A stretch of 64,000 bases of DNA from Obrimoposthia wandeli (taxonomy: Eukaryota): the NCBI GenBank assembly GCA_977020255.1, contig CDROCS010000321.1:124001-188000 (forward strand). The letters run 5' to 3'. The stretch's first letter is position 1. Each line of letters opens with the position of its first letter. Positions 43,241 through 47,265 of this stretch are shown in pieces. The notes under the pieces were generated by a model. The model searched no databases. It saw only the letters and a program-made list of their open reading frames with translations, and was not told where the DNA came from. Made by a program: the position numbers and the translations under genes.

Positions 43241-45220
43241 CTAAATAGAATCAAGAATGAATGTCATAATGGCATCTTCTTTATTCTCCATATCCAACGC
43301 TTTGGGTATGTAGTGCGGCGCTTTCAATATGCCTCTCGCAATTAACTCATCCAATAATCCTTTTGACTCAAAGCCAGTTTTACCGATAAACAAGCTTGAT
43401 ATATCACCTTGCTTATATATTTGTAACGCTTCTTTAAGTCCACGTAAATACAAATAATCTTTGGTAAAACCACCCCCTCGATAAGCTCTTAACGTAATAG
43501 TAAAGGCATCATCACTGGCGACGGTATAGTCATTGATTAAATCCAGATAACATTGATTAAACGACTCACCAGCCACCATTTTTGACACGGCAATAACACG
43601 TAATGCTAGCGTCTTTAAACGGTGTAATGGTAAATGCCCTGACAAATACTCACATAAAATGGCTAAACCTTCTTGTGCATGGGTATTACCGGGTAAACCT
43701 AATTTAAAAATGTGTAATGGCTGTACTTCCGCGTTGGCGGTTGTTAATAAATGTACGCCGAGTTCATGGTGAATAAGCGCGTTAAGATCGGTTTGGTTAA
43801 ATCGACACTCGTTATTCACCTTGATCGTACGACCACTTACCATCGCTCTGGCAATCATATTTTTAGCTTCGACAACCTTACATTTAACCCCGTATTCAAC
43901 CGCCGCTTGTTGAAATGCCACCACAGCGTCTGCAGCATCCATACTGGTTTCAATAACAGGCAAGTATTCACACGCGTGCAAAATGAACTTGGCGTTACTA
44001 ATGTCTTCTTTATTTGGCTCACCGTAATAGCGCAGTGAGTTATATAAGAATTGCTCGGTGCCAATACTGGCTAATAAATCAATGCGCATTGCCAGTTGTT
44101 CAATGACAGTGCGGTACATCTTTTGAATATCCGCATCTAAAATCGTTTCCACAGGAAGTCGATACAAGTTTTCTTTAAGCTTGTAGGGGTCGATGTCTAA
44201 CTGACGATACGTAAAATTAGGCAAATAGGAAAACGGATTATGTAAGAATCGTTTCTTTTCCTGCTTCAAATTTTTTGGCGTAATATAGTTAAGTGTATTA
44301 ATGCCACGGGCTAGGGCGTATAGCTCTTTATCTAGCTTCACGACTTCTGTCGGTAAGCAAGAAGATAATACATGCCGTAACGGTTTTCGTTTACCTTTGC
44401 TGTAATGGGTGATTGTTGCTGCAGCATGTTCGTTTATTGCTGTTTTCATGCCTTCTTTTAGTTTTTCGATGACCAGTGGAAAAGATTCTCCACCCACTTC
44501 ATTCATGTAAACCTTTTTAACTTCAATCGGCATGATTAAGGTATTACGAAAATGCTCAGTAACAAAACTAGCTTGGTAACCGAGACCTTTAAATACGTCA
44601 TTTTCAGCCACTGATACCGTAATGTTCGGTAGCTCAATGTGCTTTAATTTACGTTGTAGGTTATCGAGTACTTTACGCCAGTGACGGCTATTTAATTGCT
44701 GTGTACCAATATTAAATGTCGGCGTATTAGTGTCGATACGCTGATAATTATAAGCGTGAATATCATAAAGCAAACATAAACCAAACTTTGCCTCTAAGGT
44801 GCTAATCAAACACTTTAAAATACGGTAATAGCGGCTGTGTTTTGCTTTGCTTAACGCTATCTCGCTTGCAGGTAAAGCCGCTGACCAGACATCTTTACCC
44901 CAGGCTGTTTGGTACACACAATCCGTTAACGGCCTGTTTAAATCATATTCATAACGCGAGTCTTCAACTTGCAAGACGATCGGTTGTGAAGAGATGAAGT
45001 CGCCGGTAAAGGGATCTTCTTCAAAATAGCGTTCTTGTTCCGTCAATGCTATATGTTGGCTTAATGATTCTCGTAATTGATGCCCGTGATGAATCGCAGT
45101 TGCTATATGTGGCTGATACTCACTGATCCGTAATGTTAAACTCCCGTCCTCTAACTGTGCAGAGAAAGGGATTTGTTTACGAATATTATTGAGTATCGCC
45201 TTTTCAGTAAGCCGCTGCAT
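43241..45220 (-). CDS. Fusion of an N-formylglutamate amidohydrolase-like domain and a DUF1704 / QEGLA-motif metallopeptidase domain
   Basis: N-half: TAIHHGH, EEDPFT, SRYEYDLNR, YDIHAY. C-half: HHELGVH, QEGLA, RAYRGGGFTKDYLYLRG. Confidence 0.88.
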   Translation of the reverse strand: MQRLTEKAILNNIRKQIPFSAQLEDGSLTLRISEYQPHIATAIHHGHQLRESLSQHIALTEQERYFEEDPFTGDFISSQPIVLQVEDSRYEYDLNRPLTDCVYQTAWGKDVWSAALPASEIALSKAKHSRYYRILKCLISTLEAKFGLCLLYDIHAYNYQRIDTNTPTFNIGTQQLNSRHWRKVLDNLQRKLKHIELPNITVSVAENDVFKGLGYQASFVTEHFRNTLIMPIEVKKVYMNEVGGESFPLVIEKLKEGMKTAINEHAAATITHYSKGKRKPLRHVLSSCLPTEVVKLDKELYALARGINTLNYITPKNLKQEKKRFLHNPFSYLPNFTYRQLDIDPYKLKENLYRLPVETILDADIQKMYRTVIEQLAMRIDLLASIGTEQFLYNSLRYYGEPNKEDISNAKFILHACEYLPVIETSMDAADAVVAFQQAAVEYGVKCKVVEAKNMIARAMVSGRTIKVNNECRFNQTDLNALIHHELGVHLLTTANAEVQPLHIFKLGLPGNTHAQEGLAILCEYLSGHLPLHRLKTLALRVIAVSKMVAGESFNQCYLDLINDYTVASDDAFTITLRAYRGGGFTKDYLYLRGLKEALQIYKQGDISSLFIGKTGFESKGLLDELIARGILKAPHYIPKALDMENKEDAIMTFILDSI

Positions 45221-46232
45221 CTGCGATCACTTGGCGAAATTCATTTTTACGTGAAATACTGATATTTTTTGCGTGCACAACACTTTCTACAAAATCAATG
45301 ATCTCAACTTGTAATTTAGTGCGATTCAAACGGTTAATACGGGTGATACCACCTGGGCTTAACACATTCACTTCGACTAACTTACCGTTAATGAGATCAA
45401 GGCCAACAAGATATAAACCATCTCTGACTAACTTAGGACCAATGTGTTTACACAAACGTAATTCTTGTTTTGTCAGTACATGTTTTACTTCTTTACCGCC
45501 AGCGTGAATATTTGAACGCACATCCCCGTCTGCTGGTATACGTTTCATTGCACCAATCGGTTGTCCGTTTAACATCATAATACGAACGTCACCTTCTTCA
45601 GCACCTTCAATATAGTCTTGCAGGATGACGTAGTTTTGATTGTCACCAATATAAAAATCAAGCAAGGATTTAACACTCGATTTAGCTTTCTTATCTAATA
45701 AGATCACACCTGAACCACCATAGCCGTTTAATGGCTTAAGGATCATGCAGTCTTTGGTGTTTTCGGCTAGCACTGATTCGAGGTAATCACGTTGCTTTGA
45801 TACATGCGTTACTGGAATGAATTCTTTATTCAAATCAGACATTGACGCCGTATACAATTTATTGTTCGCTACACGCAAACCATCAATGTCATTCATGATA
45901 AAAGTATCATCACGCACTGAGTCTAAAAAGTTTAATGCCATGGTATCGAGCGGCGGATTAGAGCGCATAATAATGGCGTCAAAACCGGCTAAAGGTAACT
46001 GTGCTTCTCTAAATTCTGCCTTGCGATAAAAACCAGGAATATTTGCTGATACAGCCCCTTTTTTAAGCACTTTGCAAAAAGCGATCGACATGCTGTCACG
46101 CATCGTTAAATTATTTGGTGTCGTAATAGCAACAGTGTGACCGCGACTCGCCACTTCATGGATCATGCGAAGTGTAGAATCATTTTCTGGCTCAACACTT
46201 TCCCACGGGTACATAACAAAACAAATTTTCAT
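45204..46232 (-). CDS. Prokaryotic glutathione synthetase-like ATP-grasp ligase
   Basis: MRSNPP, NNKLY, KPLNGYGG, LQDYI, RSNIHAGG and EVNVLSPGG; 17-bp overlap with the downstream fusion gene. The symbol gshB is withheld because orthology is uncertain. Confidence 0.88.
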   Translation of the reverse strand: MKICFVMYPWESVEPENDSTLRMIHEVASRGHTVAITTPNNLTMRDSMSIAFCKVLKKGAVSANIPGFYRKAEFREAQLPLAGFDAIIMRSNPPLDTMALNFLDSVRDDTFIMNDIDGLRVANNKLYTASMSDLNKEFIPVTHVSKQRDYLESVLAENTKDCMILKPLNGYGGSGVILLDKKAKSSVKSLLDFYIGDNQNYVILQDYIEGAEEGDVRIMMLNGQPIGAMKRIPADGDVRSNIHAGGKEVKHVLTKQELRLCKHIGPKLVRDGLYLVGLDLINGKLVEVNVLSPGGITRINRLNRTKLQVEIIDFVESVVHAKNISISRKNEFRQVIADAAAY

Positions 46233-46293
46233 AGCATTCTACCAAGGTGTATAGGGGTTATTTTTCGGCGATGGTAGGGCCAGAATAGATTTG

Positions 46294-46306
46294 TGTAAAA
46301 CGAACA
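46294..46306. promoter_or_regulatory. Candidate LysR-type T-N11-A box
   Basis: TGT-AAAACGA-ACA dyad in the divergent region between the ligase gene and the LysR gene. Confidence 0.35.
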
Positions 46307-46401
46307 ATTTTGCTGCTGACGATAAGAATATTTTGTTATTGAAAATTCAAACTATATTGTATTATATGGTTATTTATTTTTATTGAATGAAGAGTAAACC
46401 C

Positions 46402-47265
46402 GTGGATACAGAACTACTTAAAACATTTTTGGAAGTCACTAGAACAAGACATTTTGGTCGTGCGGCAGATAATTTATTTTTAACGCAATCTGCGGTAAGT
46501 TTTAGGATCCGTCATTTAGAGTCGCAGTTAGGTAACCCGTTGTTTTCACGACAGCGTGGTAATTTACAGCTAACAAGCGCTGGTGACCGTTTATTGCCGT
46601 ATGCCGAATCCATTTTACAAATGTGGGGACGAGCGAAGCATGATATTGCCTTATCAGACGAGTTATCGGTCCAAATAACATTGGGCGCCTCAGCAATATT
46701 CTGGGAGTTCGACGGTATTTCCGATTGGATTAACCGTATTTCCAGCGCGGATCCTGGCCTTGCTTTACGATTGGAATCTGTTCCGCGCCAGCATATGTCT
46801 AAGCGATTGCTTGATAAGAGTATTGATCTGTCAATTACCAGCGAGCCACCGGTTAACGACGATTTTAATATTGTTAAAGTGCGTGATTATCAACTGCAAC
46901 TCGTCACCCATAAACCGTACTGTGATATGAATAATATTAGCGAATTACCTTTGGTCTATTTGGATTGGAGTACGCGCTTTTCTATTCAACATAATAAAAT
47001 AGCAGCGCTACAACGGACGGCTGTTATCCATACCGACTCATGCCGTGTTGCCTTGGATCATATTATCGGTAACGGTGGGGTGGGTTATTTGCCTTCACCG
47101 GTGATTGCACTGAGTGTGGAAGCGGGTTTATTGCATCTAGTACAGGATGCGCCAGTGATGGATCAAGCGTTATATCTTGTGTGCCGCGCTGATCATGAAA
47201 AACAAAGCATGATTGATAGTTTACTTGCGGTGCCGTTTAATAAAATTATCGAAAGTATTGATTAA
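46402..47265 (+). CDS. LysR-family regulator, HdfR-like (GTG start assumed)
   Basis: DTELLKTFLEVTRTRHFGRAADNLFLTQSAVSFRIR is nearly identical to the HdfR N-terminus. Confidence 0.88.
   Translation: MDTELLKTFLEVTRTRHFGRAADNLFLTQSAVSFRIRHLESQLGNPLFSRQRGNLQLTSAGDRLLPYAESILQMWGRAKHDIALSDELSVQITLGASAIFWEFDGISDWINRISSADPGLALRLESVPRQHMSKRLLDKSIDLSITSEPPVNDDFNIVKVRDYQLQLVTHKPYCDMNNISELPLVYLDWSTRFSIQHNKIAALQRTAVIHTDSCRVALDHIIGNGGVGYLPSPVIALSVEAGLLHLVQDAPVMDQALYLVCRADHEKQSMIDSLLAVPFNKIIESID

Follow-up and report, generated by a model that had tools for sequence, protein, structure and literature searches.

Does a glutathione synthetase-like ligase whose gene overlaps that of a two-domain hydrolase make glutathione, or does the pair add and remove a peptide or tag? 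The original prediction, made from the window alone (the whole stretch of 64,000 nucleotides that was analysed, DNA of a marine Moritella from contig CDROCS010000321.1 of assembly GCA_977020255.1), favoured the latter, proposing that an ATP-grasp ligase with no gshA nearby builds a peptide or tag that the two hydrolase domains remove under the control of a divergent LysR regulator. By extending that prediction to profile searches, structural comparisons and neighbourhood surveys of related genomes, it was possible to confirm that the gene pair is exactly as it had been described, and to establish that the proposed interpretation is supported in part.

Architecture of the overlapping gene pair

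The two open reading frames, both on the minus strand, are a 342-aa ligase (45204-46232) and a 659-aa fusion protein (43241-45220). The ATG of the fusion at 45220 and the TGA of the ligase at 45206-45204 define a 17-nt overlap (45204-45220), implying translational coupling. The same overlap occurs in Photobacterium damselae (557979-559007 and 558991-560973), and overlaps of 4-23 nt occur in most other loci examined.

Pfam and NCBIfam scans assigned the ligase a GSH-S_N domain (45873-46232) and a GSH-S_ATP domain (45324-45863), followed by a family-specific, conserved C-terminal extension of about 25 aa beyond the end of canonical GshB (45207-45281). It scored 467 bits against the NF009110/PRK12458 'glutathione synthetase' subfamily (cut-off 408; model positions 1-345 of 349), 232 bits against the GshB equivalog TIGR01380 (cut-off 299), and 278.9 bits against NF003573 'glutathione synthase' (cut-off 272). 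Against E. coli GshB (1GSA) the score was 129 bits, with the ATP, Mg and acyl-phosphate residues retained. By way of contrast, the substrate-side motifs DSSFA, RGNLAAGG and SPTC, invariant in six canonical GshBs, are replaced by DSTLR, RSNIHAGG (45495-45518, -) and SPGG (45348-45359, -), the last two corresponding to RSNLHRGG and SPGL in RimK. Equivalents of R64, R189, R211, H215 and N262 of P. aeruginosa RimK are present as R90, R217, R239, H243 and N289, although R216 is Ala here; in RimK, R211 and H215 form the 'lower substrate binding loop', and these loops line the poly-Glu site (PMC10092738). The ligase is nevertheless not a member of the RimK family as defined by TIGR00768 (79 bits, cut-off 143), its N-domain being GSH-S_N rather than Rimk_N. 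The RimK-like states RSN.H.GG, SPG and S-T-x-R are shared by both module-linked ligase clades, but the ligase tree did not resolve whether these clades are sisters, and the shared residues may be ancestral states.

The fusion protein combines an FGase-like amidohydrolase domain (residues 1-275; 44396-45220, -) with a MATCAP/QEGLA domain (residues 297-656; 43253-44332, -), a predicted HExxxH zinc metallocarboxypeptidase. PF05013 matched residues 37-233 (E 1.3e-14; 55 bits, cut-off 28.9) and PF08014 residues 323-656 (E 2.9e-102; 343 bits, cut-off 27), while TIGR02421 QEGLA returned 430 bits (cut-off 339). Translation placed HELGVH at 43751-43768 and QEGLA at 43661-43675; these align with human MATCAP HEIGTH and EEGLA, and H485, E486, H490 and E517 are invariant in 37 sequences. 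An AF2 model of the fusion (pLDDT 91.5, pTM 0.86) compared by Foldseek matched 7Z5G/7Z6S for the MATCAP domain (TM 0.61-0.67; E 1.5e-8), and 2Q7S (TM 0.72) and 2ODF (TM 0.70) for the FGase-like domain. The latter carries invariant H44, R64, E67, E68, D93, D153, H155, K235, K236 and E241, shared with the stand-alone FGase-like proteins of a second gene order (vide infra), although its metal ligands are assigned by conservation only, since a profile of the domain found no solved structure by sequence.

A divergent LysR gene (46387-47265, +; 292 aa) scored 223 bits against HdfR (NF002946; cut-off 240), with the next-best family at 90 bits, and is described as HdfR-like rather than as a proven orthologue. 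The intervening 154-bp AT-rich region (46233-46386) holds one promoter-like site for the ligase strand (46299 to 46271, TTTACA-17-TACCAT), a consensus match only, and promoter-like sites were not more frequent than in shuffled sequence. Other neighbours are moaCDE and RhlE. No gshA or canonical gshB match lies on the contig, and no PADLOC defence match was recorded.

Conservation and genomic context of the module

Whether the ligase is the only GshB of the genome, and whether its pairing with DUF1704 is conserved, had been named in advance as points that could overturn the prediction. Canonical gshB (462 bits) and gshA (623 bits) were found elsewhere in the proxy genome of Moritella dasanensis, which is 99% identical over the fusion protein and 98% in adjacent DNA. 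Canonical GshB is likewise present in Photobacterium and Marinobacterium. The ligase is therefore a paralogue and not the housekeeping enzyme. Of six module genomes outside Pseudomonadota, none has an E. coli-type GshA and four have no detectable GCS2-type gamma-Glu-Cys ligase. However, Magnetococcales with the second gene order have a plant-type gamma-Glu-Cys ligase (714-862 bits) and no canonical GshB besides the ligase of the module.

The three predicted activities recur as a unit in at least five phyla and in two gene orders: the fused form described here in Gammaproteobacteria, and FGase > long MATCAP > ligase in Magnetococcales, Planctomycetota, Acidobacteriota, Chloroflexota and KSB1. 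In the Pseudomonadota sample, every complete long-MATCAP locus but one (designated L093) has a GshB-like ligase next door. A second natural fusion, of MATCAP to the ligase in one acidobacterial protein in genome G747, together with the FGase::MATCAP fusion, ties the three activities together. For the clustering of the same functions in Bacteroidota that the original prediction had stated, only an Atlas cluster of stand-alone DUF1704 proteins, commonest in Bacteroidota, was found, no genome of that phylum being among those sampled; the conserved cluster was documented in the other phyla instead.

The association with a LysR recurs across Pseudomonadota, always as an HdfR-type LysR, and the LysRs beside distant modules are also best matched by HdfR. 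In P. damselae at low salt, the DUF413, ligase and fusion genes rise 9x, 38x and 27x, respectively, while the HdfR-type LysR falls 2.3x; no RNA run was found to contain the Moritella stretch itself. The same HdfR-LysR/DUF413 cassette fronts either RimK operons or this module, and DUF413 tails are acidic and, in all 6 Photobacterium checked, Tyr-capped. Adjacency of DUF413 to an ATP-grasp gene is not a general rule, however, since it fails in the 5 genomes without a ligase-linked module, and DUF413, whose constant partner is the HdfR-like LysR, occurs in only 5 of 301 sampled Gammaproteobacteria. DUF413 is absent from the window and from the 4 of 5 type-2 Magnetococcales genomes searched. A 53-aa acid/aromatic-tailed protein, considered as a possible universal substrate, was rejected as such because it was detected only in Photobacterium.

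Three non-homologous families whose characterised members include N-substituted-glutamate hydrolases sit next to RimK- or GshB-type ligases or, in L093, beside a long MATCAP: the FGase-like family (this module), an AstE/AspA-like family (L093 and two further loci, L122 and L123) and a formimidoylglutamase-like family (the Moritella RimK cluster). In two genomes a stand-alone MATCAP lies convergent to MscS-PF05618-RimK operons.

Possible functions of the module

The analysis itself established the GshB fold of the ligase with its full set of ATP, Mg and acyl-phosphate residues, the RimK (alpha-L-glutamate ligase) state of its substrate-side loops and of an N-domain Arg, the union in the hydrolase of an FGase-like domain bearing a full invariant polar set with a MATCAP-type HExxxH/QEG domain, the joint conservation and differing fusions of the three activities across phyla, and the fact that the ligase is not the cell's glutathione synthetase. 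What follows, including every catalytic activity, the identity of the substrate and the control exerted by the LysR, is inferred. In this view the two genes encode one co-translated add-and-trim machine, probably under the divergent HdfR-type LysR. The ligase would activate a terminal carboxylate as an acyl-phosphate and add an amino acid, most likely L-glutamate (suggested by loop similarity only). The MATCAP domain would remove alpha-linked C-terminal residues one at a time, and the FGase-like domain would cleave the last acyl-NH-Glu bond, a C-terminal glutamate being chemically an N-acyl-glutamate. Together they would set the presence or length of a short acidic tail. This write/erase logic fits the residue-level evidence of RimK-like loops in the ligase and an intact MATCAP active site. 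MATCAP/TMCP enzymes remove C-terminal Tyr and Glu and shorten poly-Glu (PMC10499314), and a bacterial precedent exists in RimK/RimB, but a literature search on bacterial MATCAP (QEGLA, DUF1704, TIGR02421) proteins found no functional study, Iyer et al. 2009 on ATP-grasp amidoligase neighbourhoods lying outside its reach. Addition and trimming of glutamate-type residues, whatever the acceptor, is considered more likely than not. That the acceptor is a protein or peptide C-terminus, with acid-tailed DUF413/MaoP-family proteins or an S6-like tail as candidates, is only tentatively preferred; such a system would work like RimK/RimB in bacteria or TTL/TTLL versus MATCAP/CCP on tubulin. No candidate target gene is conserved across phyla.

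The nearest alternative, judged somewhat less likely, is that the module makes and degrades a small molecule: an N-acyl-Glu-X compound comparable to NAAG or beta-citrylglutamate, or free oligo/poly-alpha-glutamate that buffers the glutamate pool. The ligase would then add Glu to a small carboxylate, MATCAP would remove the terminal residue and the FGase-like domain would hydrolyse the remaining N-acyl-glutamate. This reading is consistent with the retained GshB architecture, including the N-domain with its insert, and with the fact that characterised FGase, AstE/AspA and formimidoylglutamase enzymes all act on small molecules. Metabolites are also hinted at by a GGACT/AIG2-like gene directly upstream of the module in Planctomycetota, by three tandem ligases in Acidobacteria that suggest stepwise assembly, by a CitMHS-type carboxylate transporter following the module in G747, and by a distant fold similarity to phage poly-gamma-glutamate hydrolase, while the strong low-salt response fits osmolyte or glutamate-pool handling. 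Against it, the only characterised MATCAP-family enzymes act on protein tails (PMC10499314), the ligase loops resemble those of RimK, a protein-tail ligase, the HdfR/DUF413 cassette is shared with RimK operons, and no transporter or other biosynthetic gene is consistently linked.

A second glutathione synthetase, or a ligase making a gamma-Glu-Cys-X analogue, with MATCAP removing Gly (or X) and the FGase-like domain cleaving gamma-Glu-Cys, appears unlikely. The NF003573 score just above its cut-off, the Magnetococcales that lack any canonical GshB, and the GSH-peroxidase, DsbD and thioredoxin-fold genes near the P. damselae locus favour it. So does the family's name, derived from an effect on flavohaemoglobin expression; any nitrosative-stress role rests only on that name, which comes from a P. 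aeruginosa PA3697 phenotype cited in PMC8070244. Set against these are the TIGR01380 score below its cut-off, the RimK state of the discriminating loops, the canonical GshB already present in Moritella, Photobacterium and Marinobacterium, the module genomes without a gamma-Glu-Cys ligase, and the futility of co-translating a glutathione synthetase with enzymes that undo its product. That the genes share no substrate and are co-located and co-expressed for unrelated reasons, the hydrolase being for example a general peptide-scavenging enzyme and the ligase an unrelated stress enzyme, is very unlikely. Stand-alone QEGLA proteins without any ligase are common in Vibrio, and V. maerlii keeps a fusion without a ligase, but the latter has lost FGase residues (H155 to T), which suggests decay once uncoupled, and adjacency is kept, with start/stop overlaps and two different fusions, across both gene orders and at least five phyla.

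A bolder possibility, unlikely on present evidence though not excluded, is that bacteria have a counterpart of the tubulin tyrosination/glutamylation cycle, in which the ligase and hydrolase reversibly remodel the acidic C-terminal tails of DUF413/MaoP-family proteins, Tyr-capped in Photobacterium, and perhaps of other acid-tailed proteins. This would link the HdfR/MaoP cassette, known in E. coli for Ori-macrodomain organisation, to salinity or glutamate status, and the E. coli hdfR-maoP pair would then be a remnant of such a module. Irrespective of the acceptor, the annotation of the ligase as 'glutathione synthetase' in databases, and its discussion as GshB in a published transcriptome (PMC10308900), are probably wrong, which matters for reading redox and virulence data in Vibrionaceae. 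The module also gives the bacterial MATCAP family, present in about 10% of sampled Pseudomonadota, a testable biochemical context, and ties it to RimK-type modification, to the HdfR/MaoP cassette and to a strong low-salinity response.

Comparison with known systems

In the RimK/RimB (RimABK) system for polyglutamylation of ribosomal protein S6, as is proposed here, an ATP-grasp ligase is co-transcribed with a peptidase that trims what the ligase adds. The RSN.H.GG and SPG loops and conserved Arg positions match RimK (PMC10092738), and RimK operons in related genomes carry the same HdfR/DUF413 cassette and an N-acyl-amino-acid hydrolase. The present ligase differs in its N-domain and in its TIGR00768 score, the putative erasers are MATCAP plus FGase-like domains rather than the PF05618 retropepsin-like protease, and Moritella has a bona fide RimK elsewhere (444 bits). 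Relative to E. coli GshB, the two-domain architecture, a closing loop of the same length and equivalents of K125, K160, R210, R225, R233, D273, E281 and N283 (numbered from the alignment) are kept. However, identity to the organism's own GshB is only about 36%, and the ligase has replaced substrate-side motifs and a C-terminal extension, is always coupled to hydrolases, and is present in genomes without a gamma-Glu-Cys ligase. The FGase-like domain shares its predicted fold with N-formylglutamate amidohydrolase HutG, but it scored only 16.6 bits against the HutG equivalog TIGR02017 (cut-off 279), has no hut genes nearby and is fused to a predicted carboxypeptidase.

In mammalian NAAG and beta-citrylglutamate metabolism (RIMKLA/B, GCPII/III and aspartoacylase) the same three chemical roles are found, namely a RimK-type ligase adding Glu to a small carboxylate, a carboxypeptidase removing it and an N-acyl-amino-acid deacylase, although the hydrolases are not homologous (M28 there, MATCAP here) and no metabolite is known for the present module. 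In the eukaryotic tubulin tail cycle, in which TTL/TTLL ATP-grasp ligases oppose MATCAP/TMCP and M14 CCP carboxypeptidases, the writer is likewise an ATP-grasp enzyme. The C-domain of the fusion shares the MATCAP fold and HExxxH...EG active site, the fold of its N-domain is distantly related to M14/CCP-like carboxypeptidases, and acidic tails ending in Tyr occur on the operon's DUF413 protein in Photobacterium. The bacterial protein is, however, only about 19% identical to human MATCAP, has no microtubule-binding parts and no demonstrated substrate, and its ligase partner belongs to the GshB/RimK rather than the TTL branch; the module is a compact system, spanning several phyla, that joins a putative ATP-grasp writer to homologues of both classes of eukaryotic tubulin-tail erasers.

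Gene organisation and source of the locus

Two overlapping ORFs were located on the minus strand of the window, a 342-aa ORF (45204-46232) followed by a 659-aa ORF (43241-45220), the overlap of 17 nt being evident from the positions of the downstream ATG (45220) and the upstream TGA (45206-45204). The upstream protein has the two domains of prokaryotic glutathione synthetase, and passed the cut-off of the NCBIfam subfamily NF009110 (467 bits; cut-off 408) but failed that of the GshB equivalog TIGR01380 (232 bits; cut-off 299). The downstream protein combines PF05013 (FGase, residues 37-233) with PF08014/TIGR02421 (MATCAP/QEGLA, residues 297-656; 430 bits, cut-off 339), and the motifs HELGVH and QEGLA were verified by translation. 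A LysR gene (46387-47265, +), for which HdfR was by far the best family (223 bits; next best 90), lies divergent across a 154-bp AT-rich spacer, and the flanks are occupied by moaCDE and an RhlE-type helicase. The original prediction, which had described a GshB-like ligase overlapping an amidohydrolase-metallopeptidase fusion beside a divergent LysR regulator, was thereby confirmed as an observation in every particular.

The assembly that holds the window comprises 1.35 Gb in 6912 contigs and contains many different bacteria, including at least 7 canonical gshB genes, 13 gshA genes and 4 copies of the ligase plus fusion pair (contigs C321, C1101, C666 and C253), so that searches of it mix organisms. 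It also contains (contig C356, 398651-402653) a divergent GshB-like paralogue (353 bits against NF009110, below cut-off) about 2.4 kb from a RimK-like gene, with no MATCAP match on that contig. As the fusion protein is 99% identical, and adjacent DNA 98% identical, to Moritella dasanensis ArB 0140, the genome of the latter was used as a clean proxy.

A canonical gshB (462 bits) and gshA (623 bits) were found on other contigs of the M. dasanensis genome, and the same holds for Photobacterium profundum and Marinobacterium arenosum, both of which also carry the pair. The paralogue is only about 36% identical to what is probably the same organism's own GshB (locus L002, contig C506), yet is 84% identical between Moritella and Photobacterium, and hence more conserved than canonical GshB between what are probably the same lineages (75%). 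The condition set beforehand as one that would refute the proposal, which required among other things that the ligase be the only GshB in the genome, was thereby removed.

Conservation and alternative gene orders

In 24 of 25 related genome loci the ligase directly precedes the fusion, with the same overlap. In a sample of 401 Pseudomonadota, 39 carry a MATCAP-family gene: the stand-alone forms (about 390-500 aa) mostly lack a ligase neighbour, although in two small genomes (loci L086 and L087) a stand-alone MATCAP gene lies convergent to an MscS-channel/PF05618 protease/RimK operon, a further link between MATCAP and ATP-grasp genes with an osmotic flavour. By way of contrast, the long forms (about 630-690 aa) have a GshB-like ligase next door wherever the locus is complete, the one exception being a Magnetococcales locus (L093; genome G121, contig C24) in which the long MATCAP is paired with an AstE/AspA-type deacylase in place of FGase plus ligase.

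Two gene orders were apparent. Type 1, that of the window, consists of the ligase followed by the FGase::MATCAP fusion, whereas type 2 runs from a stand-alone FGase-like gene through a long MATCAP to a ligase (26-31% identical to that of the window). Type 2 is found in Magnetococcales and, with 4-nt start/stop overlaps, in Planctomycetota, Acidobacteriota, Anaerolineae and KSB1. In one Magnetococcales locus (L077, 2765-5777) a PF05618 protease and an inactive-transglutaminase/7TM protein, the neighbours typical of RimK-related ligases, lie directly downstream of the type-2 ligase. In Planctomycetota (locus L099, 4444-5145) a GGACT/AIG2 (gamma-glutamyl-cyclotransferase-like) gene lies immediately upstream of the FGase-MATCAP-ligase operon, while in Acidobacteriota (GCA_027624045.1; locus L100, 5207-11133) FGase and long MATCAP are followed by three tandem GshB-like ligases of 348 aa each. 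In one acidobacterial genome (G747) a single 984-aa protein (locus L105, 4205-7159, -) carries a long MATCAP followed by both ligase domains, preceded by an FGase gene and an M15 peptidase and followed by a CitMHS/TrkA_C transporter. The FGase::MATCAP and MATCAP::ligase fusions together constitute Rosetta-stone evidence that the three predicted activities form one unit. The clustering in Bacteroidota suggested by the original prediction remains no more than a suggestion on present evidence.

Sequence features, expression and genomic partners

Alignment with E. coli GshB (1GSA, 129 bits) indicated that the ATP, Mg and acyl-phosphate residues of the ligase are retained. However, at positions invariant in six canonical GshBs, both module-linked ligase clades share different residues: DSSFA becomes (D/Y)(S/T)TxR, RGNLAAGG becomes RSN.HAGG, and SPTC becomes SPGG. 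Alignments to RimK structures showed these to be the RimK states (RSNLHRGG, SPGL). In P. aeruginosa RimK, R64, R189 and N262 contact a bound poly-Glu chain, and R211/H215/R216 form the lower substrate loop (PMC10092738); the equivalents in the present ligase are R90, R217, N289, R239 and H243. Both clades also share a C-terminal extension of about 25 residues that GshB lacks, and the tree gave three deep clades without resolving their order. It was concluded that the enzyme has the GshB fold with a RimK-like substrate side, its addition of glutamate being an inference.

AlphaFold2 returned a confident two-domain model of the hydrolase (pLDDT 91.5, pTM 0.86), and Foldseek matched the N-domain to FGase structures (2Q7S at TM 0.72) and the C-domain to human MATCAP (TM 0.61-0.67), with M14/CCP-like carboxypeptidases and phage poly-gamma-glutamate hydrolase as more distant hits. 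HELGVH aligns with human HEIGTH, whose E281 is the catalytic residue, and QEGLA with EEGLA, where the third metal ligand is proposed to lie; the same study showed that MATCAP/TMCP enzymes remove C-terminal Tyr and then Glu, and shorten poly-Glu chains (PMC10499314). The FGase-like domain keeps an invariant polar set (H44, R64, E67, E68, D93, D153, H155, K235, K236 and E241) which is shared by the stand-alone FGase-like proteins of type 2, whereas the N-terminal part of the type-2 long MATCAPs has lost all of these residues and is, on sequence grounds, a dead pseudo-domain. Three type-1 fusions, those of Aliivibrio salmonicida, Vibrio maerlii and Thaumasiovibrio subtropicus, have lost FGase residues such as H155, and the V. 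maerlii gene also lacks a neighbouring ligase.

The LysRs examined beside type-1 and type-2 modules in Pseudomonadota are best matched by HdfR (173-225 bits; next family below 100), but none accompanies the module in the other phyla. In Photobacterium damselae the orthologous genes, which have the same lengths and the same 17-nt overlap, are among the most induced at 1% versus 3% NaCl (ligase 38x, fusion 27x, the upstream DUF413 gene 9x and a nearby 56-aa ORF 19x), while the HdfR-type gene falls 2.3x (PMC10308900). That study treats the ligase (RS17020) as glutathione synthetase GshB and cites V. cholerae gshB colonisation data; since the gene is the module's paralogue (342 aa, overlapping the QEGLA gene by 17 nt), the inference is doubtful and the assignment was considered to be mistaken.

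An unexpected partner was a DUF413 (MaoP/YifE-family) gene, which sits between the LysR and the ligase in Photobacterium, Thaumasiovibrio and two further genomes (G349 and G178), and beside the LysR in another (G394). Nearly all DUF413 proteins examined have acidic C-terminal tails, that of G394 being without one, and in all six Photobacterium checked, and in genome G122, the tail ends in Tyr (...DNDIDY, ...NNLDY, ...SDLEY). A conserved 52-57-aa basic protein (MAKLDQKF..., KKKRR core) with no Pfam family, encoded downstream of the LysR in Photobacterium (L098, 5077-5244, -, and 18 other loci), also has an acidic C-terminus ending in Y or F in 15 of 19 species; it is 18.6x induced at low salt in P. 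damselae, and was not detected outside that genus.

No DUF413 was found in the Moritella window. Elsewhere in M. dasanensis (contig C23, 4000-17000), however, a DUF413 gene is followed by two HSP20 genes, a formimidoylglutamase-like arginase-family gene, a bona fide rimK (S6-Glu ligase, 444 bits) and then a second DUF413. In Marinobacterium and G349, DUF413 and an HdfR-like LysR front operons of RimK, AstE/AspA-like and PF05618 (RimB-type protease) genes, whereas in five genomes without a ligase-linked module DUF413 pairs only with the LysR. The LysR/DUF413 cassette is therefore the constant, to which the ligase operons attach.

Functional interpretation

Three unrelated families, FGase-like, AstE/AspA-like and formimidoylglutamase-like, sit next to RimK- or GshB-type ligases or, in locus L093, beside a long MATCAP, and their characterised members include enzymes that free L-glutamate from an N-substituent. 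A C-terminal glutamate is chemically an N-acyl-glutamate. Combined with the RimK-like ligase loops and the known deglutamylase activity of MATCAP enzymes, this points to the addition and removal of terminal glutamate-type residues.

The alternative of a role in glutathione synthesis found support in the type-2 Magnetococcales, which have a plant-type gamma-Glu-Cys ligase (714-862 bits) and no canonical GshB. However, in six module genomes outside Pseudomonadota neither canonical GshB nor E. coli-type GshA was found, and in four of these no GCS2-type ligase was found either; although absence is not proven in draft genomes, the pattern argues that the ligase does not generally depend on gamma-Glu-Cys. 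A protein target for the module is only tentatively preferred, by a narrow margin, to a small-molecule target, itself a doubtful but not much weaker possibility. The 'flavohemoglobin' name traces to a P. aeruginosa PA3697 phenotype (cited in PMC8070244) and says nothing about mechanism.

The module is thus real, conserved and hitherto uncharacterised: its gene organisation, its recurrence across phyla and the residues of its domains were established directly from sequence, whereas its catalytic activities, the identity of the added residue and the nature of the target are inferred. The proposal in the original prediction that the ligase may build a peptide or tag which the hydrolase domains remove was supported in part, and it remains the best-supported frame, by analogy with the RimK/RimB and TTL/MATCAP systems.
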